Positions 2,004-48,092 of a stretch of 64,000 bases of DNA are shown one piece after another (position 1 is the stretch's first letter; every line of letters starts with the position of its first letter). Made by a program: the position numbers and the translations under genes. Under the pieces are notes generated by a model. The model made no database searches, had not been told where the DNA came from, and saw only the letters and a list, made by a program, of their open reading frames with translations. The DNA is taken from the IMG/VR virus record IMGVR_UViG_3300028558_000016, positions 310,001 through 374,000 of that record; one strand, written 5' to 3'.

Positions 2004-2006
2004 ATC

Positions 2007-2282: not shown

Positions 2283-2300
2283 CGTAATAAAAACAACAAC

Positions 2301-4094
2301 ATGAAAAGATCAACTAAACATTTCGGAGATTATTCCGATGCGGAGTTAAAAAGCATGAGTCCTGAGCAACTCATTGCTATCATCTTGGAAGGTCAGAACG
2401 ATGATAACTTCATCATCATGACAGACTCTTACAAAATGACTCATCACCTGCTTTATCCTAATGGATTAAGAAGGGTTTACTCATATATGGAACCACGCGG
2501 CGGCGAAATGCCTTACACCGTATTCTTTGGATTGCAGTATTACATCAAAAGGTATCTTGCTGGAAGAAGAATCACCAAAGAGAAAATCGAAGATGCACGT
2601 CAAGCAAACATTGCACACTTTGGATTTGATTGCTTTGATGATACAATGTGGTATCACATATTAAATAAGCACGATGGTAAACTTCCATTGAGAATTAAAG
2701 CTATTCCTGAAGGAACTCCGATCGCTGTTAAGAATATCGTGATGGATATGGAAAACTTAGACCTTGATAATTGTGCAGCATTGACAAACATCACAGAAAC
2801 ATTGTTAATGAAAATCTGGGCAACATGTACTGTCGCAGCTTACAATAGAATCATCAAGGAATTAATAACAAAGAATCACGCGATCACTTCAGACCTTCCA
2901 GCATTCTTGATTGATTACATGCACCATGATTTTGGTTACAGAGGAACTTCATCAGAAGAGACTGCACGCTTAATGGCTGCGGCTGCAATGACAAGTTTTA
3001 AAGGAACTGACACAATGGGCGGTTTAAGCTTAATCAAGAAATATTATTCTCCTGATGGAGCAACATGGTCTGAATGCATGGCAGGTTTCTCTGTTATTGC
3101 GTCTGAACACTCAGTTGTTTGTTCATACGGTGGAAGACACAAAGAAGCGAAATCATACCTTGACATTATAAACAAGGTTAAGAACCATCCTAAAATTAAG
3201 ATAGCAAAACCATTGAGCGGAGTAATTATTCTATCTTTGGTGTCTGACACTTATAACATCTACAATGTGTCTAAGAAAATTCTTAAACAATTGGAAAAAG
3301 AATTTATTGGATGGACAAACGATAACGGCATTCCAATTAAGATTGTTATTCGTCCTGACTCGGGAGTTCCTGCTAACGTGTTATTTGGATATAACGATGT
3401 TGTTAAAGGAATGGTTGCTGACAAAGATGCTTTAGCAGTAGCACCAATCGACCTTTGCAAAAGAGTTGCAGATGACATGTCGATAACTTTAGAAGAAGGA
3501 ACAGAGCTTGTGACCAAAGGAGTATTTGAAATACTGTTCGATGAATTTGGATCAACAACAAACACTAAAGGTTACAGAGTATTCCATCCACAAATAGGAG
3601 TATTACAAGGTGATGGCGTTAAGTATACTGTCATCGATGAATTCCATGAGATCATGAAAACGAAAGAATACATGATAGACATCATGATGCTTGTTGTTGG
3701 TTCAGGCGGAAAAAATCTACAGGCTCACGATCGTGATGAACAAAAATGGGCAATCAAAGCAACTGAGGTTGGCATCGATAATGACTCAGTAATGGGTGGT
3801 ATAGAAACAGTTCAAATAGAAAAAAATCCAATCACAGATCCTGGAAAGAAATCTAAAAAAGGAGATCTTAAGCTTGGCAAGAAAATGCTTAAGGTAGGCC
3901 CTGATTACGATTTCACAAAAGAATGGATGAACTTTAAAACCTTCCAAGAAGGTGAAGAAGGATTTGATACTGTAACAAACCTTTTAGTTCCTGTATTTGA
4001 AATGGGAGAAATCCTCGTTGAATACGATTTTGAAGAAGTGAGAGCGAACAGTGCGGTAGTATATCCTCAAATTAAAAAAACGGCTTTAGCCTAA
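2301..4094 (+). CDS. nadV: Nicotinamide phosphoribosyltransferase
   Basis: TDSYKMTH, HDFGYRG, ASEHS, VSDTY, IRPDSG, QGDG, KNPITDPGKKSKKG motifs. Confidence 0.95.
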   Translation: MKRSTKHFGDYSDAELKSMSPEQLIAIILEGQNDDNFIIMTDSYKMTHHLLYPNGLRRVYSYMEPRGGEMPYTVFFGLQYYIKRYLAGRRITKEKIEDARQANIAHFGFDCFDDTMWYHILNKHDGKLPLRIKAIPEGTPIAVKNIVMDMENLDLDNCAALTNITETLLMKIWATCTVAAYNRIIKELITKNHAITSDLPAFLIDYMHHDFGYRGTSSEETARLMAAAAMTSFKGTDTMGGLSLIKKYYSPDGATWSECMAGFSVIASEHSVVCSYGGRHKEAKSYLDIINKVKNHPKIKIAKPLSGVIILSLVSDTYNIYNVSKKILKQLEKEFIGWTNDNGIPIKIVIRPDSGVPANVLFGYNDVVKGMVADKDALAVAPIDLCKRVADDMSITLEEGTELVTKGVFEILFDEFGSTTNTKGYRVFHPQIGVLQGDGVKYTVIDEFHEIMKTKEYMIDIMMLVVGSGGKNLQAHDRDEQKWAIKATEVGIDNDSVMGGIETVQIEKNPITDPGKKSKKGDLKLGKKMLKVGPDYDFTKEWMNFKTFQEGEEGFDTVTNLLVPVFEMGEILVEYDFEEVRANSAVVYPQIKKTALA

Positions 4095-4095
4095 T

Positions 4096-4575
4096 ATGGA
4101 AAAACAAGTAAAAATATCTCAGTCTGTTGCCATCTTGATTGATGGCAACAACATTGAGATCAGCATACATAAGGATGCAGAGAAAGATAACGTGATGTGT
4201 GATTTCGATAATCTCGTTCCCAAGCTTATTGGCGACAGATCATTAAATCGCTTGGTGTACTTCAGAGAAGGAAAAAGCATCTCGCCTAAATTGGCAGACA
4301 GACTCCATAAATTATTTTATGGAGTTGTTAAGCCATGCAGGAAGAATGCTGACATTCGTTTAACCATTGAAGCCATACAACTTGCAAACAAAGTGGACAC
4401 AATAATAATTATGAGTGGAGATTCTGATTACATTGAGCTTGTTCAACATTTGCAATCACAGGGATTAAGAGTTGAAATAGCCGGAGTCCAATCAAGCACT
4501 TCAAAGTCATTGATTGAAGCGGCCGATTTCTTCCATCCAATAACTAAAGACGATTGGTTCACATTTAAAAATTAA
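4096..4575 (+). CDS. NYN/LabA-DUF88 PIN-like domain protein
   Basis: ILIDGNN, ADIRL, SGDSDY, LIEAADFF motifs. Confidence 0.9.
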   Translation: MEKQVKISQSVAILIDGNNIEISIHKDAEKDNVMCDFDNLVPKLIGDRSLNRLVYFREGKSISPKLADRLHKLFYGVVKPCRKNADIRLTIEAIQLANKVDTIIIMSGDSDYIELVQHLQSQGLRVEIAGVQSSTSKSLIEAADFFHPITKDDWFTFKN

Positions 4576-4580
4576 TTGAA

Positions 4581-4898
4581 ATGAAGCAAGACGAAGAAGA
4601 AGACCAAATCATTTGTATTTGTTCAAAAGAAAATTCGGCTCATACCATTGGTATAAGAGTTCCATGCCGTGGTCCAGGCTGTAATGCTCAGCTTTGGCTG
4701 AGTGACAGCACTATTAATAGAATTAAAAAGGAAAAAACGGATGTTGATTTAACGAAAACACCTCCTACCCCATTGTGTATGGATTGTGGATTGAAGGCTT
4801 TGAAAAATTCAAAGGATTTTAAAATAGCTCCACCAACCACCGAACAGATGGAAGAAATATTAAAGGCAATGACAGAAATCGATGCTCAACAAAGATGA
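4581..4898 (+). CDS. Hypothetical Cys-rich (Zn-binding) protein
   Basis: CxxxxC and CxxC motifs. Confidence 0.55.
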   Translation: MKQDEEEDQIICICSKENSAHTIGIRVPCRGPGCNAQLWLSDSTINRIKKEKTDVDLTKTPPTPLCMDCGLKALKNSKDFKIAPPTTEQMEEILKAMTEIDAQQR

Positions 4899-5514
4899 CA
4901 TAATCAAAGCAGCAGGAGTCCATCCATTAAAGGTTAAAAACATTTACGTGTTTGGATCTCGGGTATATGGAACCGCAACAGCGGACTCTGACTATGACAT
5001 CATTGTTGTTGCTAATTCCATGGATGAAAAGAGAGAAGTTGTTTATAAGGATCTCAATATCCATATTCATACTCCAGATAAATTCATTAGAGATCTCAAA
5101 CAGCTTGACATGCATAACCTCGAGTGCATCTTTGCTCCAGAAGGAGCAAAGATATTGGAAAAAGTAAATTATGTCGATGCTAATTTTAAGATCAATCCAG
5201 ACCAAATGAAATATGCTGCAATGAGCCAATCATTCAACAGGTTTCACACGGCCAAGGTGAAAATTCTCGATGGAGATTTTCACAGAGGAATTAAAAGCTT
5301 ATTTCATTCATTAAGGATATTATTGTTTTCGATGCAAATACTTCGTAATGGAAGGATCGATGATTTTTCAGAAGCTAACAAATTTTGGGCCGACATCAAG
5401 ATAGACATTCAACTTACAAAAAATATCACCAACGAGGAAGAGATGTGGAGATATTTCAAAGATAAATATCTTCCACAAAAAATTGAATTAGAAAAACGAT
5501 TAAAAGAAATGTAA
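4882..5514 (+). CDS. Pol-beta superfamily nucleotidyltransferase
   Basis: FGSRVYGTATADSDYD motif. Confidence 0.85.
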   Translation: MLNKDDIIKAAGVHPLKVKNIYVFGSRVYGTATADSDYDIIVVANSMDEKREVVYKDLNIHIHTPDKFIRDLKQLDMHNLECIFAPEGAKILEKVNYVDANFKINPDQMKYAAMSQSFNRFHTAKVKILDGDFHRGIKSLFHSLRILLFSMQILRNGRIDDFSEANKFWADIKIDIQLTKNITNEEEMWRYFKDKYLPQKIELEKRLKEM

Positions 5515-5515
5515 T

Positions 5516-5917
5516 ATGAGAGTATTAGTAATGGGACCACCTGAAAAAGAGTCCATCAAAAAAGTAAAAGAATTCGCAGAGAGCCATGTTTTAAACTTCG
5601 ATGATCTGCTTGATATTAAAAATGGCGCTGAACCTTTTGTTGGAAACAGAAAAGGACATTCTTGTATCATCCCGCAAGATTTCAGAATTGTGTTTTCTGT
5701 TGAAATGCATCCAAGAAAAGATGGAAAAGGATTCACAAAATTAAGAGTGATGTCGATGTCAGTTCCTGCTGAGGGAAAACTTCCGAGTGTTGAAGCCGTT
5801 CAAATGGTTTTACCTGAGCTTGGATTCACTTCAAAATTTGAAGACTCTTATGTTACAATGGAGAATGATGCAAAAGGAGAACCTGTTGCCATAGTAGTAA
5901 TGGAAGAATTCAAATAG
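5516..5917 (+). CDS. Hypothetical protein (TAG stop)
   Basis: ORF in operon context. Confidence 0.6.
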   Translation: MRVLVMGPPEKESIKKVKEFAESHVLNFDDLLDIKNGAEPFVGNRKGHSCIIPQDFRIVFSVEMHPRKDGKGFTKLRVMSMSVPAEGKLPSVEAVQMVLPELGFTSKFEDSYVTMENDAKGEPVAIVVMEEFK

Positions 5918-6063
5918 AATGAGACCTATAGATCATAACGACACCTTATTGTACTTTGAAGAAGAAACTGGTTTTCTTTATAAGAAGAAGAAATATAGCG
6001 GCGCAGATTATTTTTCTCCGTTAAATTTTTGTACTTTAGAGTGTACACCTAAAAAAGATAATC

Positions 6064-6387
6064 ATGGCAACACAATTAACACCGTCAAAGAAGCAATTCA
6101 AGAACATACAGGAAATATACAACTACGCAGAGAACCAAAACGACAACCTGCACGTTGGGGACTTAGACCATACGTCAGCCTGCGAGATAGAACACCGAGA
6201 CGGGTCCAAGTTTTATTTAACCAATGTTCACATGGAATTGGTACGGTTCACAACAAAAACATTCGACGAAACTGTGTACATAGCATACTCGGAACATCAC
6301 CAACCACTCGTGTATATGGAATCGGACCTCGTGTCAGAACCAAAAATAATCCCATTAGGAAAGAAGAAGCTCGTAAAAAAGAAATAA
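6064..6387 (+). CDS. Hypothetical protein
   Basis: ORF with phage-like composition. Confidence 0.6.
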   Translation: MATQLTPSKKQFKNIQEIYNYAENQNDNLHVGDLDHTSACEIEHRDGSKFYLTNVHMELVRFTTKTFDETVYIAYSEHHQPLVYMESDLVSEPKIIPLGKKKLVKKK

Positions 6388-6402
6388 GATTTCCAATATC
6401 AC

Positions 6403-6858
6403 ATGGGACGAGAAAATTTTAAGCTATTAATACGTAATTTAAGAACGATGGAAACAACATGCGGGATATTTTTATTCTTAAAAAACGGAAAACTGTTGTT
6501 GGGACACGTAACAAACACTCAAGACAAATGGAGCATTCCGAAAGGACTTCCGGATGATGGAGAAGAATTGTTCGATGCAGCCAAACGAGAGATGTTCGAG
6601 GAGTCAAACATAGAATACGATAAGCTTAAGATAAACACCATTGTAAACAACCAATATACTTATTATAAGAATGGAAAGAAGAAGCTGTTCTCATTAACAG
6701 TTCACACTCATAATGAGGAAAAAGATTTTGATTTGAAATGTCATTCTTTGGTAAATGATGATTTTCCTGAAATAGATGGATATAAATTTGTCACAATAAA
6801 AGAAGCATTGGATATGGACATCCAAGAAACACAAAAAGAAATATTAAGAAATATATGA
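6403..6858 (+). CDS. Nudix hydrolase
   Basis: WSIPKGLPDDGEELFDAAKREMFEES; FPEID. Confidence 0.9.
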   Translation: MGRENFKLLIRNLRTMETTCGIFLFLKNGKLLLGHVTNTQDKWSIPKGLPDDGEELFDAAKREMFEESNIEYDKLKINTIVNNQYTYYKNGKKKLFSLTVHTHNEEKDFDLKCHSLVNDDFPEIDGYKFVTIKEALDMDIQETQKEILRNI

Positions 6859-7361
6859 ATAAGCTCGAATATAGAATGTATGGAATAGTTCCTTACAACA
6901 TTTCAGAAATACAAAAAGGAATCCAATTTGGACATGCTGTTGTAGAATACTCGTTGAAGTATTTTAAGAACGAAGACTTTCAACAGTGGGCCAAGAAGCA
7001 CAAAACATTCATGGTTATGAATGGAGGAACAACCAATATGGGAGAAGGAACAATTCAAGGAAGACCCGATTGGATGGTTGAAGAACTTAAAGGGTCATTA
7101 AATAAATACGCCGATTTACTTTCCAAAAATAAAATCAAATGCGCTTATTTCTTTGAGCCAGACTTAAATGATGCTTTAACTGCCGCGGTATTTCTTGCAG
7201 ATGAAAGAGTTTTCGACAAGATTAAATATCCTGATTATGTTCCTCTTTCTTTTGATTTAGCAAAAAATGATCCACAACACGAGAAAGAATGGGTCAAATC
7301 TATAGGAGGAAAACAAAATGTTTTCCTTCGTGAATTCATATCTAAACTAAGATTTGCATGA
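6855..7361 (+). CDS. PTH2-like (peptidyl-tRNA hydrolase type 2 fold) phage protein
   Basis: QKGIQFGHAVVEY ... FFEPDLNDALTA pattern. Confidence 0.6.
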   Translation: MNKLEYRMYGIVPYNISEIQKGIQFGHAVVEYSLKYFKNEDFQQWAKKHKTFMVMNGGTTNMGEGTIQGRPDWMVEELKGSLNKYADLLSKNKIKCAYFFEPDLNDALTAAVFLADERVFDKIKYPDYVPLSFDLAKNDPQHEKEWVKSIGGKQNVFLREFISKLRFA

Positions 7362-8044
7362 AAACGACAGACAAATACGTATTATTTTATACTGAGGTAT
7401 TTTCTCAGTGGCATCCTTCCAATTTTGAAGTAGGAGGTAAAAAATTCTGCACAGCAGAACAATTCATGATGTATTTCAAAGCATTAACGTTCGGTGATCA
7501 AGAGATTGCAGACAAGATATTAGCAACAAATAGTCCACGTGAACAAAAGAAACTTGGACGCGCTGTTAAAGGATTTGATGCTGTTAAATGGAATGCAATA
7601 GCCAAGGAAGTTGTATTCAAAGGAAACAGAGCTAAGTTTCAACAGAATCCAGAAATGTTCGAACAATTAATGGCAACAGGACACAAAGAACTTGTTGAAG
7701 CTTCCCCTTATGATACTATATGGGGAATAGGCTTTGATGAAAATGCTCCTGAAGCTCTTGATAAGTCAACATGGAATGGAACAAATTGGCTTGGCGAAGT
7801 ATTAACAAAGCTTAGAGATGTTCTTAGAAGAGAACAGACAATTCAAAACATAGTGAAACATGGTGAAGCTGAATTGGAAAAATTTGCCAGGGATTATCCA
7901 AATGACATAGGACGATTGTATGAAAGCTATAAAAAATTGAAAACACAATCTTGGTCTGAAGATTTTTTAAGAGGATATTTAGGAGCTATAACAGATTTAA
8001 TTATTATTAAAAAAGGACATTGGGGAGACTCATTTGTAAAATAA
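7358..8044 (+). CDS. NADAR/YbiA family protein
   Basis: FSQW, TAEQFMM, KKLGRAV, LVEASPYDTIWGIG, GTNWLG motifs. Confidence 0.92.
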   Translation: MKTTDKYVLFYTEVFSQWHPSNFEVGGKKFCTAEQFMMYFKALTFGDQEIADKILATNSPREQKKLGRAVKGFDAVKWNAIAKEVVFKGNRAKFQQNPEMFEQLMATGHKELVEASPYDTIWGIGFDENAPEALDKSTWNGTNWLGEVLTKLRDVLRREQTIQNIVKHGEAELEKFARDYPNDIGRLYESYKKLKTQSWSEDFLRGYLGAITDLIIIKKGHWGDSFVK

Positions 8045-8238
8045 TGGGAAATAAAAACAGATTATACAGAAATACCGATGATTGTTTTATCGGTGGAGTT
8101 TGTTCTGGAATATCAGACAAGCTTGGAATAGATCCAACATACGTTCGTGTATTGTGGGCTCTTTTCATATTCCTATTTGGATATGGATTATTGTTATACA
8201 TCCTCCTATGGATTATAATGCCTGAAAATGAAAACTAA
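8044..8238 (+). CDS. PspC domain protein
   Basis: RLYR..DCFIGGVCSGI...GIDPTYVR...YILLWIIMP. Confidence 0.9.
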   Translation: MGNKNRLYRNTDDCFIGGVCSGISDKLGIDPTYVRVLWALFIFLFGYGLLLYILLWIIMPENEN

Positions 8239-8500
8239 ATACGTCATAACTTTCCTTTTGAGCCTGACGATCTGTTTGTGTTCAGTATTGTATTTCCAAT
8301 TTTATTGGATGTTATTCATGCCTTTATTGGCCACAAATTTATTTCTTCCATTCTATATGATGGATCTTAAATCGGTAGAAACAAAGATGGAAATAATATT
8401 CTTCTTCTTGGTTCCGTTTGCAAGCGTTTTGTGGATTTTTGTAGATGGACTTCCTGGAACAATTTCTTACTTTGGAGATAAATGGAAAGAATTGAAATGA
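8228..8500 (+). CDS. Small membrane protein
   Basis: Hydrophobic ORF. Confidence 0.55.
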   Translation: MKTKYVITFLLSLTICLCSVLYFQFYWMLFMPLLATNLFLPFYMMDLKSVETKMEIIFFFLVPFASVLWIFVDGLPGTISYFGDKWKELK

Positions 8501-8667
8501 CAGCTTTATTAATCATATACATTATCGGTGCCTTGTTATTTCTATTCCTACTTTCATTAGATGCCAGCGCATTTAAACCTAAACATATAATACTAATAAC
8601 AGTATTTTGGTTTCTGTGGTTGCTTTACTTCTTGGTCATTTCAGTGACGCACTTCAAGAGAAAATAA
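8497..8667 (+). CDS. Small membrane protein
   Basis: Two hydrophobic segments. Confidence 0.5.
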   Translation: MTALLIIYIIGALLFLFLLSLDASAFKPKHIILITVFWFLWLLYFLVISVTHFKRK

Positions 8668-8681
8668 TAGATATATAAGTC

Positions 8682-9605
8682 GTGAAAAGATTCCACGATT
8701 ATAGCACATTCAACGGCCTTGAAAATCTAAAACAGATTGTTGCCAAGAAAGATCCTTCCATGAGCGAAGACCTCATGAAGGCACTATTTCCATTAAGAGA
8801 TAAGAACATTGGCAAAACATTGAAGGACATCATAAAGAGATTTGAAAAATCCGCTGAATACGATACACCGAACAAATGGTTCAGTCCAAACAAGTATAAC
8901 ACTTTTATGGAATACTTTCAAAGAGGATTAACCGACAAGAAGAAAGAAGAAATAGAAGCAACCATAGATCAATATCTCATGGTCATGCCTTCTGAATCAA
9001 ACATTGAATCAATAGGAAATTTCTCAGACACTTCATCGATATTAAGATTGAAGAAACCGACTAAAGACGTAGTTAAGGATTTAATGGATTTTGGAATAAG
9101 TGATGTGAGCACATTAAACTTTATAAGCCTAAAGCTTCTCAAATGTTATTACCACAGGGTGCATTGCCCAGTAAGCGGAACTATACAAAAGATAACATTC
9201 ATTGGAAGAGAAGAACCGTTGTTTGGAGACAATTCCCTATGGGTGGTTGAATTCAATTCAGAAGAAGGAAGAATTTACATGCTTGTAGTTGGAGAACTTT
9301 CTATACAGGATTTTAATTTCAACTTCAAAGAAGGAGACAAGGTTAACAAATTTGAAGAGCTCGGAAAATTCAATTGGGGTTCTCAGCTCGTTTTAATATA
9401 TGCAAAAGATTCATTCGTAAGCGAACCGTTGATCATAGAAAAGGAGAAATATTTTGTTGGTGATGGAATATTTAATAAGACAAAAATAGTTCAAGGCGAT
9501 ATTCTTAATTCAATGCCAATTGACCAGATAGGAAATGGACAAAGAAACGGAACAATATACGGAGATGATATTTTAAAAGCACCAACAGGAGCAAACATAT
9601 TTTAA
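8682..9605 (+). CDS. Phosphatidylserine decarboxylase-like protein
   Basis: F..YFQR.L, YYHRVHCPVSG, ELGKFNWGSQLVL (GxFxxGS autocleavage motif); GTG start. Confidence 0.7.
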   Translation: MKRFHDYSTFNGLENLKQIVAKKDPSMSEDLMKALFPLRDKNIGKTLKDIIKRFEKSAEYDTPNKWFSPNKYNTFMEYFQRGLTDKKKEEIEATIDQYLMVMPSESNIESIGNFSDTSSILRLKKPTKDVVKDLMDFGISDVSTLNFISLKLLKCYYHRVHCPVSGTIQKITFIGREEPLFGDNSLWVVEFNSEEGRIYMLVVGELSIQDFNFNFKEGDKVNKFEELGKFNWGSQLVLIYAKDSFVSEPLIIEKEKYFVGDGIFNKTKIVQGDILNSMPIDQIGNGQRNGTIYGDDILKAPTGANIF

Positions 9606-9980: not shown

Positions 9981-10208
9981 ATGAGCAATGAATTAATAAG
10001 AATACTTAAAGACATAACACATGACAATGAAGAAAAAAGACTTCAAAAAGCGAGTGAATGTTCTGATGGAATAAGCTATTACAATTGTAATGCTTTACCA
10101 ATGGTAGATCAATTAGCAAATGAACTTTCCAAGTTGTCTGAAGTTGAATTGTCATTGGCCTTAAGAATTCTCGTTAGAAAGACTCAGAAAAAGGCCCAGA
10201 AAAAATAA
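9981..10208 (+). CDS. Hypothetical protein
   Basis: ORF downstream of a TATATTTG box. Confidence 0.55.
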   Translation: MSNELIRILKDITHDNEEKRLQKASECSDGISYYNCNALPMVDQLANELSKLSEVELSLALRILVRKTQKKAQKK

Positions 10209-10233
10209 ATTTTTTAGTTTCAGAAATAGTTCC

Positions 10234-10241
10234 TATATTTG
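10234..10241 (+). promoter_or_regulatory. Bacteroidota-type sigma-A -7 box (TAnnTTTG)
   Basis: TATATTTG; same box recurs near 9969, 16490, 23375, 28358, 47648 and 54525 upstream of genes. Confidence 0.7.
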
Positions 10242-10244
10242 CAC

Positions 10245-10406
10245 TGATCATAGTTAAATGGCTTTATGCAATATATGTGTAGCTGTTCTACCTTCATCAG
10301 ATGCAAGGACAAAAATTTAGGTGCGGTTATCTCCTTGCTAAACTATCGCATAGGTCAGGATTGCATTGAGAAATGCAATTGTATGGACAGACTTTAGGTA
10401 TGATCA
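10245..10406 (+). ncRNA. Candidate structured ncRNA
   Basis: Terminal stem TGATCATA/TATGATCA, several internal helices, GAGA-tetraloop hairpin, no ORF, own promoter box. Confidence 0.55.
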
Positions 10407-10448
10407 TAATTTTAGAAACAAAAAAGGTATATAAGAATATAACAAGTC

Positions 10449-10520
10449 ATGAAAACAACATTGTCATTAAGTCTAAGTTTGTCGCTATCCTTATCAGGAT
10501 GGACTAACCGGGCTATGTGA
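10449..10520 (+). CDS. Leu/Ser-rich attenuator leader peptide MKTTLSLSLSLSLSLSGWTNRAM
   Basis: 12 alternating Leu/Ser codons using 7 different codons, followed by a terminator and a Leu/Ser tRNA array. Confidence 0.85.
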   Translation: MKTTLSLSLSLSLSLSGWTNRAM

Positions 10521-10549
10521 TAATTTCTGACTAATAAGAAATTTGAATG

Positions 10550-10580
10550 AACCCGGTGGAAACATCGGGTTTTTTATTTT
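10550..10580 (+). terminator. Attenuator terminator
   Basis: AACCCGGTG-GAAA-CATCGGGTT + T tract; 5' arm CCCGGT also complementary to ACCGGG (10507-10512) in the leader. Confidence 0.85.
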
Positions 10581-10588
10581 ATACACAT

Positions 10589-10671
10589 GCCCATGTGGCG
10601 GAATTGGTAGACGCGCCGGTCTTAGGAACCGGTGCCTTTAAGGCGTGCAGGTTCGAGTCCTGTCATGGGTA
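10589..10671 (+). tRNA. tRNA-Leu(TAG)
   Basis: Cloverleaf, anticodon arm CCGGT-CTTAGGA-ACCGG, long variable arm. Confidence 0.95.
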
Positions 10672-10752
10672 CAACGTGGTGAAAGTACATTCAGACTGTA
10701 CCATCAGATTTTAGCTACTGATGAAGCATTTGTGGTGATGCTGCTGCGAATT

Positions 10753-10839
10753 GGTGAGATGTCCGAGTGGTTTAAGGAGCAACCCTGGAAAGGTTGTATA
10801 CGGGAAACCGTATCGTGGGTTCGAATCCCACTCTCACCG
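10753..10839 (+). tRNA. tRNA-Ser(GGA)
   Basis: CAACC-CTGGAAA-GGTTG, long variable arm, G73. Confidence 0.95.
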
Positions 10840-10849
10840 CAAATAAAAT

Positions 10850-10934
10850 GGAAGGTTGGTAGAGCGGTCTATTGCACCAGTCTTGAAAACTGGAGATCCT
10901 ACGGGGTCCGTGAGTTCGAATCTCACACCTTCCG
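10850..10934 (+). tRNA. tRNA-Ser(TGA)
   Basis: CCAGT-CTTGAAA-ACTGG, long variable arm, G73. Confidence 0.95.
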
Positions 10935-10939
10935 CAATT

Positions 10940-11027
10940 GGAGAGCTACTCAAGTTGGTTAAGAGGCGCGTTTGCTAAACGTGTAGGACGAGAAATCGTT
11001 GGGTGGGTTCGAACCCCACGCTCTCCG
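10940..11027 (+). tRNA. tRNA-Ser(GCT)
   Basis: CGCGT-TTGCTAA-ACGTG, long variable arm. Confidence 0.95.
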
Positions 11028-11038
11028 CAGAAAATTCT

Positions 11039-11121
11039 GCCCCCATGGTGGAATTGGTAGACACGCAGGACTTAAAATCCTGTGCCCTTAGGGCGTACGA
11101 GTTCGAGTCTCGTTGGGGGTA
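11039..11121 (+). tRNA. tRNA-Leu(TAA)
   Basis: CAGGA-CTTAAAA-TCCTG. Confidence 0.95.
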
Positions 11122-11128
11122 CATAAAT

Positions 11129-11210
11129 GCCGAGTTGGCGGAATTGGTAGACGCGCTGGTCTCAAACACCAGTGACGAAAGTCGTGTGGGTTCGAGTCCC
11201 ACACTCGGTA
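11129..11210 (+). tRNA. tRNA-Leu(CAA)
   Basis: CTGGT-CTCAAAC-ACCAG. Confidence 0.95.
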
Positions 11211-11226
11211 CAAGAAGAAGAATAAA

Positions 11227-12690
11227 ATGGAAAATGATAAAAAATATTGCTTGGTGATGTTTCCTTATCCGTCTGGAGATGGATTGCACATTGGACATTG
11301 CTACAACTACTTGATAGTTGATAGCTATTGTCGTTGGATGAAGAGAAAAGGAATTGAAGTGTTTCAACCATTTGGTTATGACGCTTTCGGTTTGCCTGCG
11401 GAGAATTATGCGATCAAGCATAACAGAGATCCAAAAGAAGTCACCTATGAAAACATAGAAAATTTCAGAAGGCAGATGAAGAGATTGGATACTAATTATG
11501 AAGAGAAGTTAATTACAGCTGATCCATCTTATTTCAAATGGACACAATGGTTGTTCACAAAGATGTTGGAGAAGGGAATTGCTTACAAGAAATTTCATCC
11601 AGTAAACTTTTGTCCATCTTGCGCAACAGTGATTGCCAATGAGCAGGTGAAGGAAGGAAAATGTGAGAGATGCAATTCAGTTGTTGAGATGAAAAACTTG
11701 AATCAATGGTTCTTCAGAATAACAGACTACACAGATAGGTTGATCAAGAACTTGCAATGGTTGGATTATCCCGAGAAAACCAAGAAGCAACAATTACATT
11801 GGTTGGAGAAGATGAAAGAAAACAAGATCGATTGGTGTGTGTCAAGACAGAGAAAATGGGGATGTCCAATTCCTGTTGAAGGAGAGGAAGATACTTTGGA
11901 CACATTTGTTGACAGCTCATTTTACTACTTGAGATTCTTGACGGATTCTGAAGATGAATTCTTGCCAAGAGAAAAATATAAGCAGGTTGATTTGTACGTC
12001 GGAGGAAATGAACATGCTTGCATGCATTTGATTTATGCAAGATTTGTGAACATGTTCTTGTATGACTTGGGAATTGTTGAACAAGAAGAACCGTTCAAGA
12101 AGTTGATTCATCAGGGAATGATCAAGATGAATGGAACAAAGATGTCCAAGTCTATCGGCAATGTTGTTAATCCGGATGGGTATGATCCAGATGAATTGAG
12201 ATTTTACTTGATGTTCATTGGACATTATTTTGATGGCGGAGATTGGAACGATCAAAACATTGTTGGCATAAGAAAATTCTTTGCACGATGGGATAAGCTT
12301 ACTTTTAGAGAAGCAAAGGAAGGAATTGAATCTATGGATTTGACTGAATTTGAAAACCAGATCGATGGTTATGTGAAAGCTTTCAAGTTCAATAAGGTTG
12401 TTAGTTCATTCATGGAATTTTACAACAATAATAGCAGCAGAAACTTTGACAAGGAAACCAGATTGAAGTTGAGAAGAATGTTGGAGTGTTTTGCGCCAAC
12501 AAGATTTTCTAAAGATGAAAGGCCTCCAGTTGGCATGGATGAATTAAGAAGAAAATCCAATGAGTTGTCTGAGAACGTAAACAAGATTGAAGTAATGGTT
12601 AATAAAATTTTTAAAGATGTTGAACAAAAAGAAAATATCACCGGAATATCCGAGAATACCTCACTTGATGGGGAAGTCAAATCTGTATGA
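11227..12690 (+). CDS. leuS: Minimal leucyl-tRNA synthetase (no CP1 editing domain)
   Basis: MFPYPSG-LHIGH, GYDAFGLPAEN, DWCVSRQRKWG, DTFVDSS, GGNEHA, KMSKS; only 487 aa. Confidence 0.9.
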   Translation: MENDKKYCLVMFPYPSGDGLHIGHCYNYLIVDSYCRWMKRKGIEVFQPFGYDAFGLPAENYAIKHNRDPKEVTYENIENFRRQMKRLDTNYEEKLITADPSYFKWTQWLFTKMLEKGIAYKKFHPVNFCPSCATVIANEQVKEGKCERCNSVVEMKNLNQWFFRITDYTDRLIKNLQWLDYPEKTKKQQLHWLEKMKENKIDWCVSRQRKWGCPIPVEGEEDTLDTFVDSSFYYLRFLTDSEDEFLPREKYKQVDLYVGGNEHACMHLIYARFVNMFLYDLGIVEQEEPFKKLIHQGMIKMNGTKMSKSIGNVVNPDGYDPDELRFYLMFIGHYFDGGDWNDQNIVGIRKFFARWDKLTFREAKEGIESMDLTEFENQIDGYVKAFKFNKVVSSFMEFYNNNSSRNFDKETRLKLRRMLECFAPTRFSKDERPPVGMDELRRKSNELSENVNKIEVMVNKIFKDVEQKENITGISENTSLDGEVKSV

Positions 12691-13321
12691 CGATGACATT
12701 GAGATCAATGTTGAGTTAGGGTTTGATGCCTTTGTACAAGAGAAGGTTGATGGAGCAAACTGTGGAATCAGTTGGTTCGATGGACCCATTCTCAGAAACA
12801 GAACCCATGTGTTAAGAAAGGGATTTGAAAGAGACACTCCAGCAAAGAAACAATTTGTTCCAGCTTGGAATTGGTTGCATGAAAGAGAAGATGACTTGAA
12901 GGAGATGATGAAGAAGTGGAATGGACAGATAACTGTTTATGGAGAGTGGATGCTTGCAAAACATTCTATTGGATATGAGAAGCTTCCAGATTATTTTCTT
13001 GCTTATGACATTTGGTCGTGTGAAGAAAACAAGTTTGTTTCTCCGAAGGAATGCAAGGAACTTTTGAATGGGACTGGCATAAGATGGATCGAAGCAGAAA
13101 GAATAAGCATTCAATCGTTCTCTGATTTGAAGTCAGTTCTTGATGTTCCCTCTAAGTACAGAGATGGAATTAAAGAAGGAATAGTTATCAAGAAAACTGA
13201 CGAAGACGATAAGTGGATAGAGAAGACTTTCAAGGTTGTTAGAAAAGATTTTGAAAGGGCTGATGAAAGCTGGAATAAGAAAAAGCTTGAAAAGAATAAG
13301 CTGATAAAGAGGAGTGCCTGA
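12617..13321 (+). CDS. RNA ligase (ATP-dependent nucleotidyltransferase)
   Basis: YPRIPHL, QEKVDGAN (motif I), YGEW, FLAYDI, EGIVIK. Confidence 0.85.
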   Translation: MLNKKKISPEYPRIPHLMGKSNLYDDDIEINVELGFDAFVQEKVDGANCGISWFDGPILRNRTHVLRKGFERDTPAKKQFVPAWNWLHEREDDLKEMMKKWNGQITVYGEWMLAKHSIGYEKLPDYFLAYDIWSCEENKFVSPKECKELLNGTGIRWIEAERISIQSFSDLKSVLDVPSKYRDGIKEGIVIKKTDEDDKWIEKTFKVVRKDFERADESWNKKKLEKNKLIKRSA

Positions 13322-13393
13322 GTGGCTGAAAGGACCGGTCTCGAAAACCGGCACACCCAAAAGGTGTCGTGAGTTCGAATCTCACCTCCTCTG
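13308..13393 (+). tRNA. tRNA-Ser(CGA)
   Basis: CCGGT-CTCGAAA-ACCGG; overlaps the end of the RNA ligase ORF. Confidence 0.93.
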
Positions 13394-13432
13394 CATTTTT
13401 TAATTTGATGATTTTTTTGTAAATTCACTATC

Positions 13433-13738
13433 ATGAATGATGAAGATAAAAAAATAAAGGGATCATTGTTTTTCTTGTACATCGGCAAGCTTAAAGAATT
13501 GGGTTTGATAGAAGGTGGCGCAGGAGATTTGACCATGAAAGGTTTTGACATTGCCATTGATGCCTATAACAGTGGACATAGATTGTCAGATGAGGAGATT
13601 AGTAATTTTCTCGAAGCCGCTCCTGGAATGGACGATGACGACACAATAGAGGCAGCATTTGGAATGATAGCCAAGATGCAAGAAATTGGATTTGATGGAA
13701 TGAAAGAATTGGTTGAACGAGTAAAGAAAACATTATGA
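13433..13738 (+). CDS. Hypothetical protein
   Basis: ORF. Confidence 0.6.
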   Translation: MNDEDKKIKGSLFFLYIGKLKELGLIEGGAGDLTMKGFDIAIDAYNSGHRLSDEEISNFLEAAPGMDDDDTIEAAFGMIAKMQEIGFDGMKELVERVKKTL

Positions 13739-14445
13739 AAAAGAAATTAGTGGTGTTTAGCGGTGCAGGAGTTTCTGCTGAGAGCGGAATTCCTACATTC
13801 AGAGATTCAAATGGTCTTTGGGAAAACCATAAGATGGAAGATGTTGCTACTCCAGAAGGATGGGAGAAAAACAGAGAGCTTGTTCTCAACTTCTACAATC
13901 TTATGAGAACGAAACTCAAAGCAGTTGTTCCGAATAAAGCTCACAATATAATTGCAGAGCTTGAAGAACATTTTGAAGTTACAGTCATCACACAAAACAT
14001 AGATGACTTGCATGAGAGAAGCGGCTCAAAGAAGGTCATACATCTTCATGGAGAATTAATGAAGAGCAGAAGCACATTTAATCCAAATCTAAAATACGAG
14101 TGTACTGGAAATATAAACATAGGTGACAAATGTGAGAAAGGTTCTCAATTGAGGCCTGACATAGTTTGGTTTCATGAAAATGTTTATCACCTTGACACTG
14201 CGGCTGAATTGGTAGAACAGTGCGATATTCTTCTTGTTGTTGGAACTTCATTAAATGTTTGGCCTGCAGCAGGATTGTTATATGTGACGAAACCGGAAAC
14301 TGAAATATATTGCATTGATCCAAAAACAGTTGTTGGAAGTGATATTCAAGTTACTCACATAAAGAAGAAAGCGAGTGAAGGGATGGAGAAATTTAAAAAG
14401 ATTATTCTCGAGAAAAAAGATAAGAAAGAAAATTGCTGTTTATAA
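13735..14445 (+). CDS. cobB: Sir2/CobB NAD-dependent deacylase
   Basis: GAGVSAESGIPTFR, TQNIDDLHE, HLHG, LRPDIVWF, VGTS. Confidence 0.95.
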   Translation: MKKKLVVFSGAGVSAESGIPTFRDSNGLWENHKMEDVATPEGWEKNRELVLNFYNLMRTKLKAVVPNKAHNIIAELEEHFEVTVITQNIDDLHERSGSKKVIHLHGELMKSRSTFNPNLKYECTGNINIGDKCEKGSQLRPDIVWFHENVYHLDTAAELVEQCDILLVVGTSLNVWPAAGLLYVTKPETEIYCIDPKTVVGSDIQVTHIKKKASEGMEKFKKIILEKKDKKENCCL

Positions 14446-15978: not shown

Positions 15979-16461
15979 ATGGAGCGTAATTACGTGTTAT
16001 TCATATTCAATAATTCTAAGGATGAATTCCTTAAGGAACCAAAAGAACTTAAAATACTACAGCAAGTAACGGTAGGAGATATTAGAGGAGCAAGCTGTGG
16101 TCCAATCAACATGTGTTTCTTTCCAAGTGAACACAGCAAAGAAGAAATTTCCGATTTGTTAGTAAAAGATGGAATTCATTTTCTTCTTGTGGATGATCAA
16201 GATTCTGAACATTCATACCCAAAACACATTCGTAGCATGTTATCCGGAAAAATGGATCACACCGCTGTCAGAAAGATAGAAATAGGTGGTGGAATGGAAA
16301 TTACTGAACCAAAGAAATTATCATTGGAAGATCAACTCAAAGAAGCTTTAAAAGAAGACGATTTTGAGTTGGCCGCAGTATTACGTGACAAAATAGCCAA
16401 AGCAAAATCCCCAGAACCTAAGACAGGAAAGGGCTCAACCCTAAGGCAACTTTTTGATTAA
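15979..16461 (+). CDS. Protein with C-terminal UvrB/UvrC motif
   Basis: LEDQLKEALKEDDFELAAVLRDKI. Confidence 0.7.
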   Translation: MERNYVLFIFNNSKDEFLKEPKELKILQQVTVGDIRGASCGPINMCFFPSEHSKEEISDLLVKDGIHFLLVDDQDSEHSYPKHIRSMLSGKMDHTAVRKIEIGGGMEITEPKKLSLEDQLKEALKEDDFELAAVLRDKIAKAKSPEPKTGKGSTLRQLFD

Positions 16462-16503
16462 AATCTTTTTAATTTTAATTGATTTTTAGTATATTTGTTC
16501 TCT

Positions 16504-17238
16504 GTGATAGAGATAAAATGTATATTAAAATACGATCCTGTTCCATTATCTGGAAAAGCAGAAACCATGTGCAAACCTTGGTGGATGATCGCAACATGCG
16601 AAGGAGATCTCACTGAATATTATGCATGGCTTCTTAAAAAACGAACAGGATTAATTCTCCAACGCCCTGCATGGGGCGCACATATCTCAGTCATAAGAGG
16701 AGAAGAACCACCCAACAAAGAATTATGGAAAAAATACCAGGACAAAGAAGTCACTTTGCTCTATGATCCAAACGTCAGAACAAATGGAGATCATTGGTGG
16801 ATGAGAGTCCATTGCAACGAACTTCTTGACATAAGAGAAGAATTAGGTCTTCCAAGATTTGGAGCATTAACTTTACACCTCACGTTAGGAAGACCAATCC
16901 CAAGACACGAAGAAGCATCAGATTATTTCCATACAGTTTTTAAATCATTCGCTCCATCGGCGCCAATAAGACCATACATGACACAAGAAGAAGCTTTAAA
17001 GAATTTGTCTTTGCCTCCAATGGAAGTAAAGCATAAAGAATTAAAAACACCTGAACATTCAGACTCTATGTTCAGAAAGGAATGTCCAAACTGTGAGACT
17101 GGATTATTGATGATGAAAAGAAATCAGTCAACGCTCGCTCTTGAAAAAGATGATAATTGCACTTATTGTGGAAGACGATTCACTTACACTGACATAAAAG
17201 AAAACTCAGTAATATTAGAATATAATGAAAAAGCTTGA
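16504..17238 (+). CDS. 2H-phosphoesterase-like protein with C-terminal Zn ribbon
   Basis: HISV and HLTL motifs; CPNC..CTYC; probable GTG start. Confidence 0.55.
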   Translation: MIEIKCILKYDPVPLSGKAETMCKPWWMIATCEGDLTEYYAWLLKKRTGLILQRPAWGAHISVIRGEEPPNKELWKKYQDKEVTLLYDPNVRTNGDHWWMRVHCNELLDIREELGLPRFGALTLHLTLGRPIPRHEEASDYFHTVFKSFAPSAPIRPYMTQEEALKNLSLPPMEVKHKELKTPEHSDSMFRKECPNCETGLLMMKRNQSTLALEKDDNCTYCGRRFTYTDIKENSVILEYNEKA

Positions 17239-17599
17239 AACAAAAGATATAGAAAAAAATGGTGTAGCAGTGGAAAATTACGAAGGGGTATTATCTTACA
17301 TCTGTGAAGACGTTAATCGTAGTATAAGACTTACTACTTTCCTCAAAGACGAACTATCATCCATTTTTGGTACACACAACACAAAATACAAAGGTGACGA
17401 GTATAATTTTCACGTATGGATAATTGAGTTCGAACAAGAAATATTTCAGATTTTCACAGCTAATGGTAAAGGAACTTGTTTCTCTATTGTGGATCCAACA
17501 TTCTCGTTCGATGATGATGGACAACCGGACGGTAAATCTGACGTATGTTTAAGATTCCTAAAAGACATGGACATGAAACTTCAAAAGCTAATAAAATGA
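17225..17599 (+). CDS. Hypothetical protein
   Basis: ORF. Confidence 0.6.
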   Translation: MKKLETKDIEKNGVAVENYEGVLSYICEDVNRSIRLTTFLKDELSSIFGTHNTKYKGDEYNFHVWIIEFEQEIFQIFTANGKGTCFSIVDPTFSFDDDGQPDGKSDVCLRFLKDMDMKLQKLIK

Positions 17600-17600
17600 A

Positions 17601-48012: not shown

Positions 48013-48020
48013 ATTTGCAG

Positions 48021-48092
48021 AACTCCAAGTGGGGATCGAACCCACGACCAAAGGTTTTAGAGACCTACGTTCTACCACTGAACTATTGGAGC
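48021..48092 (-). tRNA. Amber suppressor tRNA (anticodon CUA)
   Basis: GCTCCAA-TA-GTTC AGTGGTA GAAC-G-TAGGT CTCTAAA ACCTT-TGGTC-GTGGG TTCGATC CCCAC-TTGGAGT-T. Confidence 0.9.

Follow-up and report, generated by a model that had tools for sequence, protein, structure and literature searches.

Computational evidence for a probable leader-peptide attenuator controlling leucine and serine tRNA genes in a huge phage

What is the role of a short open reading frame (ORF), made up largely of alternating leucine and serine codons, that is followed by an intrinsic terminator and then by tRNA genes for leucine and serine in a phage genome? We addressed this for IMG/VR record IMGVR_UViG_3300028558_000016, positions 310,001-374,000, where the whole 64,000-nt stretch analysed is referred to as the window and all coordinates are window positions. 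An earlier interpretation (here the sequence-only reading) had proposed a ribosome-stalling attenuator gating the tRNA genes. Our data support this computationally through the structures, their conservation and co-variation, the promoter, and recurrence of the design; in the absence of experimental data we regard it as likely that the locus is a ribosome-mediated (leader-peptide) transcription attenuator. Its parts and their positions are shown, and the central ones are:

10449-10520, + strand: leader ORF of 23 sense codons, with ATG at 10449 and TGA at 10518-10520
10461-10496, + strand: regulatory block (region 1), codons 5-16, 12 alternating Leu/Ser codons
10507-10512, + strand: region 2, the ACCGGG strand of the antiterminator, located within the ORF (10 nt past the final Ser codon, 5 nt ahead of the stop)
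10522-10543, + strand: small hairpin nested in the antiterminator (arms 10522-10528 and 10537-10543; -4.3 kcal/mol)
10549-10572, + strand: intrinsic terminator stem-loop of 10 bp, -14.8 kcal/mol (region 3, 10549-10558; GAAA loop, 10559-10562; region 4, 10563-10572)
10573-10580, + strand: T-tract of the terminator
10589-11211, + strand: six tRNA genes, Leu-TAG, Ser-GGA, Ser-TGA, Ser-GCT, Leu-TAA and Leu-CAA (ARAGORN)

Leu and Ser occupy 12 of the 22 codons after the initiator, and the terminator stem ends 16 nt short of tRNA-Leu (TAG); two membership tests for an attenuator (a short ORF in which codons for the sensed amino acids are clustered, and an intrinsic terminator between leader and regulated genes) are thus met. 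Region 2 is complementary to CCCGGT at 10552-10557 in the 5' arm of the terminator. The ORF, the GAAA-capped terminator, this pairing and the nested hairpin had all been claimed by the sequence-only reading and held in the sequence check and in the folds. The Leu/Ser block is, as that reading also held, encoded by seven different codons and therefore no DNA tandem repeat; as evidence that isoacceptors are sampled this is weakened, as seven kinds among 12 codons are expected from the codon usage of the window (P(≥7) = 0.67). The further claim, that for each codon there is a downstream tRNA to read it, holds (12/12) but is uninformative because the array is a complete set of Leu and Ser isoacceptors, and monitoring of individual isoacceptors is not shown for this window. 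The leader codons are skewed towards rare ones (CTA, TCG, TCC and AGT are present; CTT and TCT are absent). That the leader is actually translated is an inference without experimental data. No further leader-like modules were found elsewhere in the 64-kb window.

The sequence-only reading had suggested searching related phages for a conserved Leu/Ser leader with synonymous variation and a covarying antiterminator; the search was run and all of these were found. Leader conservation was examined in L065/L066/L067, L062, L018 and L150, and the Leu/Ser leader is kept in five related phages with changes that are synonymous, swap Leu for Ser or the reverse, and remain in frame. Between the window and L018, 11 of the 12 regulatory codons differ and every one still specifies Leu or Ser, and leader indels among the relatives are 3 or 6 nt. 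The leader is hence conserved at the amino-acid and not the nucleotide level. All relatives have a terminator, with differing sequences. Co-variation is shown as well: the pairing of region 2 with the terminator arm is CCGGG:CCCGG in the window versus UUGAG:CUCAA in L018, and in L065 the nested hairpin is preserved by changes on both sides of one pair.

The alternative structures were evaluated by folding. In free RNA the Leu/Ser codons pair with 10500-10532 in a 1:2 hairpin (10445-10532, -24.3 kcal/mol), so that the membership test of an anti-antiterminator pairing in untranslated RNA is met in the window and in L065, and the antiterminator element (10505-10559) has a folding energy of -15.6 kcal/mol. 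Together with that of the terminator, these three energies are of the order typical for classical attenuators, and the region folds better than 200 of 200 shuffles (z -4.7). Folding with and without a ribosome footprint, as had been suggested, was run on nascent RNA cut before the 3' arm of the terminator, with a footprint reaching from -15 to +14 nt relative to the A site (a modelling choice). With the A site at codons 5-15, region 2 pairs with 10552-10557; without a ribosome there is no antiterminator and the 1:2 hairpin forms instead; and with the A site at codon 17 or later no antiterminator forms, region 2 being covered once the ribosome is past codon 16. These position-dependent folds were reproduced in L065, L062 and L018 despite their different sequences, and the membership test of an antiterminator placed to respond to a stalled versus a finishing ribosome is met, on computational grounds only. 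The switch is seen in truncated nascent RNA and not at full-length equilibrium: in minimum free energy folds of the full 10440-10580 RNA, with the ribosome mask at every codon, the terminator was always retained. The switch must therefore be kinetic, as in classical attenuators; this kinetic competition is inferred, and the switch would rely both on kinetics during transcription and on the coupling of transcription to translation in the host.

Transcription of the leader would start at a putative promoter, listed here with the elements between it and the leader ORF:

10234-10241, + strand: putative promoter, Bacteroidota-type -7 box TATATTTG
10245-10402, + strand: lineage-specific insertion of ~158 nt within the transcript's 5' leader; L065 and L062 lack it, and there the conserved 5' UTR directly follows the promoter
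10403-10448, + strand: conserved A-rich 5' UTR of the leader, near-identical between the window, L065 and L062; L018 and L150 have a recognisable counterpart

The -7 box and the A/T-rich stretch preceding it are kept in L065, L062 and L150, 45-52 nt from the leader ATG, and TAnnTTTG occurs within 120 nt upstream in 16 of 28 modules of this kind in huge phages (see below) versus 10% at random positions. As a window-wide promoter signal TAnnTTTG shows no enrichment, and the assignment therefore rests on position and conservation. The insertion has inverted ends; it folds no better than shuffles, gave no Rfam match, and no second copy was found. A AATATATA-like motif is present 5-12 nt upstream of the leader ATG and recurs in most modules.

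These data bear on the possibility that the hairpin is merely the terminator (insulator) of the upstream unit, the small ORF being fortuitous and the tRNAs being transcribed from another promoter. Terminators often separate phage transcription units, and a chance TAnnTTTG match does lie inside the leader at 10474-10481. However, this match is not conserved in L065 or L062, the conserved promoter is upstream of the leader and not of the terminator alone, and the 16 nt between stem and tRNA-Leu(TAG) leave no space for the separate promoter that would have refuted the sequence-only reading. Moreover, the amino-acid conservation of the ORF, the leader/tRNA match far beyond chance and the locus-specific antiterminator complementarity (both below) speak against it, and we consider this alternative very unlikely.

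Downstream of the array the following genes were identified:

11227-12690, + strand: short LeuRS-like class I synthetase without editing domain (Pfam tRNA-synt_1/1g)
12617-13321, + strand: RNA ligase (Pfam RNA_ligase 3e-27; PHROG RNA ligase), ORF as listed with its true start uncertain
13308-13394, + strand: tRNA-Ser (CGA) (ARAGORN; Rfam at gathering threshold)
13735-14445, + strand: Sir2-family protein (Pfam SIR2 3e-45), syntenic in L062 and L065
14450-14532, + strand: tRNA-Leu (GAG) (ARAGORN)

For the six tRNAs of the array, the Rfam tRNA model detected five at the gathering threshold and all six in an E-value scan; in BLASTn searches against cultured and deposited phages tRNAs were the only matches. 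The LeuRS-like protein has thousands of relatives of ~420 aa, and its best solved relative is the Mycoplasma mobile LeuRS (3ziu), which likewise lacks the editing domain. Using tBLASTn, no phage-type copy was found in cultured phages: an uncultured huge phage provides the sole close match (64.5% identity), and the matches in records bearing the names of cultured phages are weak (≤44%) and resemble ordinary bacterial LeuRS. Co-control of the LeuRS-like and RNA ligase genes, as had been proposed, is an inference whose sole basis is that no terminator or promoter match lies in between, and the extent of the read-through transcript is equally an inference. The window also encodes Pnkp and RNA ligase of the tRNA-repair type, and NAD-salvage genes are located nearby. 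TAG recoding, prompted by two tRNAs with CTA anticodons, was considered and rejected, there being no split frames in the window.

The design is not confined to this locus, and its generality is shown. Approximately 28 leader-terminator modules, representing at least 15 unrelated types, were identified ahead of tRNA arrays in uncultured huge phages. Among 15 unrelated types the leaders are enriched in the amino acids of their own downstream tRNAs (odds ratio ~32-33, Fisher p 9e-20; 0 of 20000 permutations), and 11 leader ORFs match their downstream tRNAs at p<1e-3, against 1.1 expected. Over all modules the 20 amino acids are covered (20/20), with up to seven per leader and with Gln-only, Lys-only and Glu/Tyr leaders among the simpler ones, and each array amino acid is found in its own leader, Met being the sole exception among 24 tabulated pairs. 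The complete 635-kb phage genome LR745206.1 carries seven modules, which are present at all four array regions and account for 49-51 of its 59 tRNAs. Chance origin of the leader in the window is excluded, given its conservation in relatives and the family-wide match between leader and tRNAs.

The architecture recurs too: a strong terminator follows 17 of 21 candidate leaders, a matching leader is present at 16 of ~19 strong terminators upstream of tRNAs, and the terminator starts 20-37 nt after the leader stop. Region 2 starts at a median of 7 nt past the final regulatory codon and in every case is inside the ORF or immediately next to the stop codon. For 17 modules the 3' part of the leader pairs with its own terminator arm with a mean of -11.5 kcal/mol, compared to -7.0 kcal/mol (sd 0.57) when partners are swapped (0 of 5000 permutations). 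Regulatory codons over all modules are far rarer than predicted from the codon usage of the locus (0 of 5000 simulations), and codon-to-anticodon matching is in weak excess (248 vs 237.5 expected, P = 0.017). In many other modules the antiterminator forms also in untranslated RNA and there is no 1:2 hairpin, which accordingly is not family-wide; untranslated transcripts of such modules would read through, a departure from the textbook design. No module could be detected at some arrays (L009, L004/L148) or at any isolated tRNA. In 1.38 Mb of control loci, none of 16 array starts had an upstream terminator; these loci were retrieved by scanning metagenomes and genome collections with the LeuRS-like alignment, are mostly bacterial LeuRS loci with few tRNAs, and serve as a negative control only.

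The following mechanism is proposed. A host-type promoter (about 10234-10241) would start transcription, and the leader would be translated while it emerges. With ample Leu- and Ser-tRNAs the ribosome would clear the 12 Leu/Ser codons, then enter and cover region 2; the terminator would form and RNA polymerase would halt 9-16 nt short of the tRNA array. Slow reading of any Leu or Ser codon, be it that the tRNA is scarce, cleaved or uncharged, would stall the ribosome on 10461-10496 and leave region 2 free to pair with the 5' arm of the terminator once this is made, i.e. to form the antiterminator. Polymerase would then continue into the Leu/Ser tRNA array and probably also into the genes for the LeuRS-like protein, RNA ligase, tRNA-Ser (CGA), Sir2 and tRNA-Leu (GAG). 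Since the products would relieve the stall, this would constitute a negative-feedback loop with supply on demand. The physiological trigger is inferred; genes for RNA repair and NAD salvage in the neighbourhood lend plausibility to anticodon nuclease or starvation, as suggested by the sequence-only reading, in the absence of experimental data.

A variant of this mechanism keeps the attenuator and holds that the signal is ordinary amino-acid starvation and that the LeuRS-like, RNA ligase and Sir2 genes are the main targets, the tRNAs being merely co-transcribed. In its favour, a stalled ribosome cannot distinguish a missing from an uncharged tRNA, and the LeuRS-like gene directly follows the array; a synthetase operon (pheST) is known to be attenuated. 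Yet the leader has Ser codons and no SerRS is present, leader amino acids track the tRNAs in about 28 modules, where most arrays lack a cognate synthetase nearby, and internal modules, placed between tRNA sub-arrays, are followed by tRNAs alone. We therefore judge this variant to be unlikely.

Another possibility is that the peptide itself is active, either through nascent-chain arrest (as in TnaC, SecM and ErmCL) or as a small hydrophobic protein serving some separate function. Leu/Ser-rich peptides are hydrophobic, and across modules the leaders begin alike (MKT/MKN/MTT) and have a polar segment downstream of the regulatory block. However, the peptides have sequence in common only at their ends, and the middles are entirely different from one tRNA set to the next. 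The C-terminal segment that recurs coincides with region 2, the nucleotides of which co-vary with the terminator arm, and the constraint is therefore on the RNA and not on the peptide; this makes an active peptide very improbable.

A translation-independent RNA switch, e.g. direct T-box-like binding of tRNA to the leader RNA, can be all but ruled out. T-box leaders do gate translation-related genes by antitermination that depends on tRNA status. In the region 10000-11300, however, neither the T-box covariance model (membership not met) nor any other riboswitch gave a match at E≤10, and the region lacks the size and conserved elements of a T-box. Furthermore, the frame, start, stop and amino-acid identity are kept while the nucleotides drift, and a single specifier cannot account for leaders with up to seven specificities.

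Returning to the leader-peptide attenuator, a bolder reading is that it represents a general programmable code, where each tRNA sub-array of huge phages is gated by its own leader spelling its amino acids and chained modules cause only the tRNAs in short supply to be transcribed; we consider this fairly likely. If true, the phage would gauge the decoding capacity of the cell codon family by codon family, by a direct feedback from tRNA supply to tRNA gene transcription that is not known for any cell or virus, which would serve against tRNA-targeting defences and in matching supply to the codon demand of the phage. Should the attenuation mechanism hold, huge phages would make tRNAs on demand, per amino acid, rather than constitutively, and the question of codon usage versus counter-defence would become testable, the leader revealing what the phage measures. 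The modules would also constitute a natural library of compact, orthogonal sensors of decoding capacity for all 20 amino acids, of use in synthetic biology and in detecting tRNA-cleaving immunity. For annotators, the order short ORF, terminator, tRNAs would provide a rule that finds small genes missed by every gene caller.

How does this compare with known systems? Textbook control of tRNA genes is at the promoter level (growth rate and stringent response). To our knowledge no organism or virus has been shown to gate tRNA transcription by the decoding speed of matching codons; none was found in the full-text literature searched, nor was any account of phage tRNA genes preceded by a leader peptide, in agreement with the sequence-only reading, which knew of no described phage tRNA attenuator. 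Phage tRNAs have been studied as counter-defence against tRNA-cleaving immunity, e.g. PARIS AriB (PMC12409363) and Cash (PMC13462974). These studies provide a rationale for replacing specific tRNAs, and the window has RNA ligase and Pnkp, but they address tRNA function and not the switching of tRNA genes. T-boxes similarly couple tRNA status to translation-related genes by antitermination; they sense uncharged tRNA by direct RNA-RNA contact, without ribosome or ORF. In mycobacteria, poly-Cys leaderless short ORFs are Cys-responsive attenuators (bioRxiv 10.1101/834739) and, as proposed here, ORFs of one codon kind couple decoding speed to downstream expression, but they regulate cysteine metabolism genes and not tRNAs. 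The pheM leader of the Escherichia coli pheST (PheRS) operon is a case of leader-peptide attenuation of a translation-apparatus gene, and a synthetase-like gene is also present in the window unit. PheM, however, reads one amino acid and controls a synthetase, whereas in the window the first and main products are tRNAs.

The closest likeness is to the Enterobacteria attenuators trpL, hisL, leuL, thrL and ilvL (RF00513, RF00514, RF00512, RF00506), which share the short ORF with a run of regulatory codons, the alternative 1:2, 2:3 and 3:4 pairings and the intrinsic terminator; leuL in addition shares the rare codons, and thrL and ilvL the multi-amino-acid ("multivalent") leaders. An Rfam scan for leader families (Trp_leader, Leu_leader, His_leader and Thr_leader) gave none at the gathering threshold, and membership is not met; a sub-threshold Trp_leader match (22.9 bits vs a threshold of 41, E 0.068), the only one besides tRNAs at E≤10, reflects the shared architecture. 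The phage modules differ in being phage-borne, in reading up to seven amino acids per leader and in being chained inside arrays. Leader-peptide attenuation itself is already known and what would be new is its application to tRNA genes: classical attenuators control biosynthetic enzymes, whereas the phage modules would control tRNA genes, the output of which would feed back on the very quantity that is sensed.

The leader, terminator and tRNA genes of the window, which comes from the 482-kb contig IMGVR_UViG_3300028558_000016 of an uncultured phage, likely act as a ribosome-mediated attenuator whose regulated product is the very tRNA that is sensed; the case is wholly computational, and translation and switching are inferred. 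The generality of this leader-terminator-tRNA design is the main new result of our analysis. The parts of the unit are listed below (L-numbers denote huge-phage loci fetched for comparison, each with its own coordinates).

Features of the probable attenuator unit
10234-10241, putative Bacteroidota-type -7 box TATATTTG, conserved with an A/T-rich upstream stretch in L065, L062 and L150
10449-10520, leader ORF: ATG start, 23 sense codons, TGA stop
10549-10572, terminator stem-loop: 10-bp stem, GAAA loop, -14.8 kcal/mol, 28 nt past the leader stop
after the stem, up to 10580, terminator T-run
10589-11211, six closely spaced tRNA genes: Leu-TAG, Ser-GGA, Ser-TGA, Ser-GCT, Leu-TAA, Leu-CAA
11227-12690, short LeuRS-like protein without editing domain
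beyond the LeuRS-like gene, in order: RNA ligase, tRNA-Ser-CGA, 101-aa ORF, Sir2-family gene, tRNA-Leu-GAG

Leader codons 5-16 are Leu and Ser in strict turn, spelled with seven different codons, and the fold of the leader region beats 200 of 200 shuffles (z -4.7). Against chance, we give more weight to the comparative evidence. A Leu/Ser leader, terminator and Ser/Leu tRNA array lie at the same place in phages with LeuRS-like proteins 76-87% identical to that of the window, and likewise in L018 (63% identical); the loci with the conserved module are L065, L066, L067, L062, L018 and L150. Of the 12 regulatory (Leu/Ser) codons, 11 have different nucleotides in the window and in L018, TCN/AGY switches included, and all still specify Leu or Ser, while indels within this block in the relatives compared are of 3 or 6 nt. 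Such drift is the mark of a sequence that is translated and under selection for the amino acids it encodes, as far as can be inferred from sequence alone. The window leader prefers rare codons (CTA, TCG, TCC and AGT used; CTT and TCT avoided), and over all modules the regulatory codons are rarer than expected (summed log-likelihood -402.6 observed, -323.1 with sd 10.5 simulated).

The sequence-only reading, which had proposed a Leu/Ser leader-peptide attenuator and a search for it in related phages, thus held in its coordinates and base-pairing statements, and in its claim that the dipeptide repeat is not a DNA repeat, which the codon differences and in-frame indels confirm. Its use of seven distinct codons as support failed, seven among 12 being expected from window codon usage (P = 0.67). 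That a tRNA for every leader codon lies downstream is true but without value as evidence, because the Leu and Ser isoacceptor set is complete once Leu-GAG and Ser-CGA are counted and the match is automatic.

As to gene order, the protein genes past 11211 are inferred to lie on the read-through transcript, since neither a terminator nor a promoter match comes in between. The L065 and L062 arrays begin with Ser-GGA and carry Leu-TAG further down, and Leu-TAG has therefore moved in the lineage of the window; the 80-nt spacer (10673-10752) between Leu-TAG and Ser-GGA has no relative among the fetched loci. Related arrays also contain many tRNA-Leu genes of just 74-77 nt (e.g. L062 4794-4867, L065 4884-4957, L007 3803-3877), in which the long variable arm, the defining trait of bacterial tRNA-Leu, is missing; they adjoin Leu tRNAs of the normal 83-88 nt. 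No CP1 editing domain is present in the LeuRS-like protein, and among solved structures its best match is Mycoplasma mobile LeuRS (3ziu), an enzyme naturally devoid of editing; the family (~410-450 aa) is very large in metagenomes, with at least 8000 matches, many on 200-600 kb contigs.

In folding at equilibrium the complete leader retained the terminator whatever the position of the ribosome footprint. The E. coli trp attenuator likewise retains its terminator in equilibrium folding, so this outcome is uninformative on the switch, and we therefore folded the nascent RNA, with the terminator 5' arm and loop made and the 3' arm absent, using a model footprint. In ribosome-free RNA, the Leu/Ser codons are taken up in pairing with 10500-10532 (hairpin 10445-10532, -24.3 kcal/mol) and the terminator arm is unpaired. 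When the A site is placed at any codon from 5 to 15, and only with a ribosome there, ACCGGG (10507-10512, region 2) pairs with CCCGGU (10552-10557) around a small hairpin (10522-10543), giving an antiterminator of -15.6 kcal/mol, similar in size to the terminator; from codon 17 onwards region 2 is covered and the antiterminator is absent. The modelled folds match the classical four-region attenuator logic. Folding with and without a footprint, a check suggested by the sequence-only reading, agrees with an attenuator for this nascent RNA, and in the related phages the Leu/Ser leader is kept despite codon changes and the antiterminator strands are altered together in L018 (region 2:terminator arm UUGAG:CUCAA, versus CCGGG:CCCGG in the window). 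L065, L062 and L018 fold in the same manner from different sequences, and the nested hairpin of L065 is changed on both sides. The untranslated RNA of many other modules already forms the antiterminator, so the logic elsewhere may differ in detail. That the product is a functional or arrest peptide is very unlikely, since only the peptide ends recur and the recurring C-terminal part coincides with region 2, whose changes track those of the terminator.

A separate promoter between terminator and first tRNA, named beforehand as a refuting observation, has no room, because only 16 nt separate the terminator stem from that gene. The -7 box lies 45-52 nt ahead of the leader ATG in L065, L062 and L150; in the window alone, ~158 nt of inserted sequence (10245-10402) stand between the box and the conserved 5' UTR. 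This insertion has inverted ends (TGATCATAG ... TATGATCA) and is missing from L065 and L062; its fold is not above shuffles, and neither an Rfam match nor a second copy in the window or fetched loci was found. A 75-aa ORF (9981-10208) directly upstream is likewise inserted relative to L065 and L062. The TAnnTTTG within the leader (10474-10481) was rejected as a promoter, being an unconserved chance match. Modules that come first in an array usually have a -7 box ~45-60 nt upstream, and internal ones directly follow a tRNA and have none; this suggests serial gates along one transcript, an inference from sequence alone. Most leaders have an AAAGG(G)A stretch and a AATATATA-like motif ending 5-12 nt ahead of the ATG (e.g. 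window 10426-10443, L153 2840-2869, L240 48350-48379), which may either serve in translation initiation or act as a second promoter, phage-specific, from which an almost leaderless mRNA would arise. Upstream of the L038 module a sigma-70-like TTGACA/TATAAA pair replaces TAnnTTTG in a G+C-richer context, and the module type is perhaps not restricted to phages of Bacteroidota.

Short ORFs upstream of tRNAs were sought irrespective of composition in 59 huge-phage loci gathered via the LeuRS-like gene; the resulting modules come from loci picked by this one marker gene and from one complete genome.

Examples of modules with other amino acids (leader; downstream tRNAs)
L007 2943-3029, Leu/Tyr-rich; Tyr and seven Leu
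L005 9893-9970, six Gln codons; four Gln
L017 10754-10789, Lys-rich; Lys
L048 9396-9431, Lys-rich; Lys
L017 8850-8939, rich in His, Phe, Trp, Lys; His, His, Trp, Phe, Trp, Lys
L023 8002-8103, rich in Asn, Leu, Ile, Thr, Cys, Val, Met; Asn, Leu, Asn, Leu, Ile, Thr, Val, Thr, Val, Met, Cys, Met
L048 10547-10606, Ser/Arg-rich; Ser, Arg, Ser
L010 2026-2100, rich in Leu, Val, Cys; Cys, Val, Leu
L038 797-931, rich in Gly, Arg, Val, Ala, Asn; Met, Gly, Gly, Arg, Arg, Val, Asn, Ala, Asn

Enrichment in the amino acids of the own array was seen for 11 of 227 such ORFs (binomial p<1e-3), and for a mean of 1.1 (maximum 5) when arrays were reassigned between loci. When 15 unrelated module types were each represented once, amino acids occurring at least three times in the leader matched the tRNAs downstream (odds ratio 33; Fisher p 9e-20; 0/20000 permutations reached the observed count). 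All array amino acids are found in the leader in 23 of 24 tabulated pairs, Met being the sole exception, and the modules jointly cover all 20 amino acids. A strong terminator lies 20-37 nt past the stop in 17/21 candidate leaders; conversely, a leader of matching type precedes 16 of the ~19 strong terminators located ≤600 nt upstream of a tRNA. The median distance from the last regulatory codon to the start of region 2 is 7 nt, and this start is always inside the ORF or directly next to the stop codon; the leader 3' part pairs with its own terminator arm at -11.5 kcal/mol, versus -7.0 (sd 0.57) with those of other loci (0/5000 permutations).

The complete 635-kb genome of an uncultured phage, LR745206.1 (LeuRS-like protein 64.5% identical to that of the window), has 59 tRNA genes. 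Its four array regions (49 to 51 tRNAs, depending on two outlying genes) are all split among seven modules (His/Lys/Phe/Trp; Ser/Arg; Glu/Tyr; Ile/Gly/Ala; an Asn/Leu/Thr/Val/Ile/Met group; Pro/Asp/Gln; Gln), each fitting the tRNAs that lie before the following module, and isolated tRNAs outside these regions have none. Among 1.38 Mb of mostly bacterial control loci fetched via the same protein, a terminator ≤650 nt upstream was found at 0/16 tRNA array starts. The 12-tRNA array (Ile, Leu, Pro, Asn) of a 455-kb phage (L009, identical to L068; 904-4921) has no module by the criteria used, and may be under different control or have been missed by our thresholds. In loci that have no tRNA, a 13-codon ORF of Met, Leu and Ile codons only (L040 4531-4572, equal to L039 3681-3722) lies ~430 nt ahead of the LeuRS-like gene, and might be a leader for a protein gene.

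An insulator terminator with a fortuitous ORF is very unlikely, as conservation and the leader/tRNA statistics rule against it. A T-box-like RNA is also very unlikely: no model matched, and frame conservation and seven-specificity leaders would be unexplained. Response to amino-acid starvation only, with the synthetase as true target, is unlikely, leaving both the Ser codons and the many synthetase-less arrays unexplained.

Under attenuation by the sensed tRNA, the tRNA made would be the tRNA read, so the loop would be a negative-feedback supply on demand. What causes the stall is not readable from the sequence; too little tRNA for the codon demand of the phage, cleavage by a host anticodon nuclease, host tRNA loss during takeover and uncharged tRNA are each possible. 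Host, RNA polymerase used and degree of transcription-translation coupling are undetermined. The neighbourhood leans, tentatively, towards counter-defence, because RNA-repair and NAD-salvage genes surround the unit; this is context and not proof.

Neighbouring genes
1158-2003 and 6403-6858, two NUDIX proteins
2301-4094, NAMPT
4882-5514, RlaP-like nucleotidyltransferase
7358-8044, NADAR
13735-14445, Sir2-family gene
16495-17238, 2H-phosphoesterase (weak match)
17601-18548, polynucleotide kinase-phosphatase, of tRNA-repair type like the nearby RNA ligase

The unit sits within this NAD-salvage/RNA-repair island (1158-9605 and 15979-18548), which resembles a counter-defence or translation-rescue island. 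Elsewhere, two tRNAs have the anticodon CTA (amber suppressors, labelled 'Pyl' by ARAGORN; 48020-48092 on the minus and 58276-58349 on the plus strand). TAG stops are rare (5/75 long plus-strand frames), and no gene pair in the same frame split by TAG was found in the window; recoding is therefore not evident locally.

The window meets every structural feature of the leader-peptide attenuator class that is testable in silico, and by sequence its leader belongs to no Rfam leader family (Trp_leader 22.9 bits, threshold 41). In the literature searched (PubMed Central and bioRxiv full text) we found no leader peptide or attenuation tied to phage or cellular tRNA genes, in agreement with the initial supposition that no described attenuator controls phage tRNA genes; such attenuation is likely undescribed, although coverage was incomplete and an earlier description is possible. 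The working principle is that of trpL, leuL, thrL and ilvL, of which thrL and ilvL are also multivalent. The phage modules differ from these in that the target is tRNA genes, which closes the loop on itself, in that the user is a virus, and in being modular and chained, with up to seven amino acids per leader.
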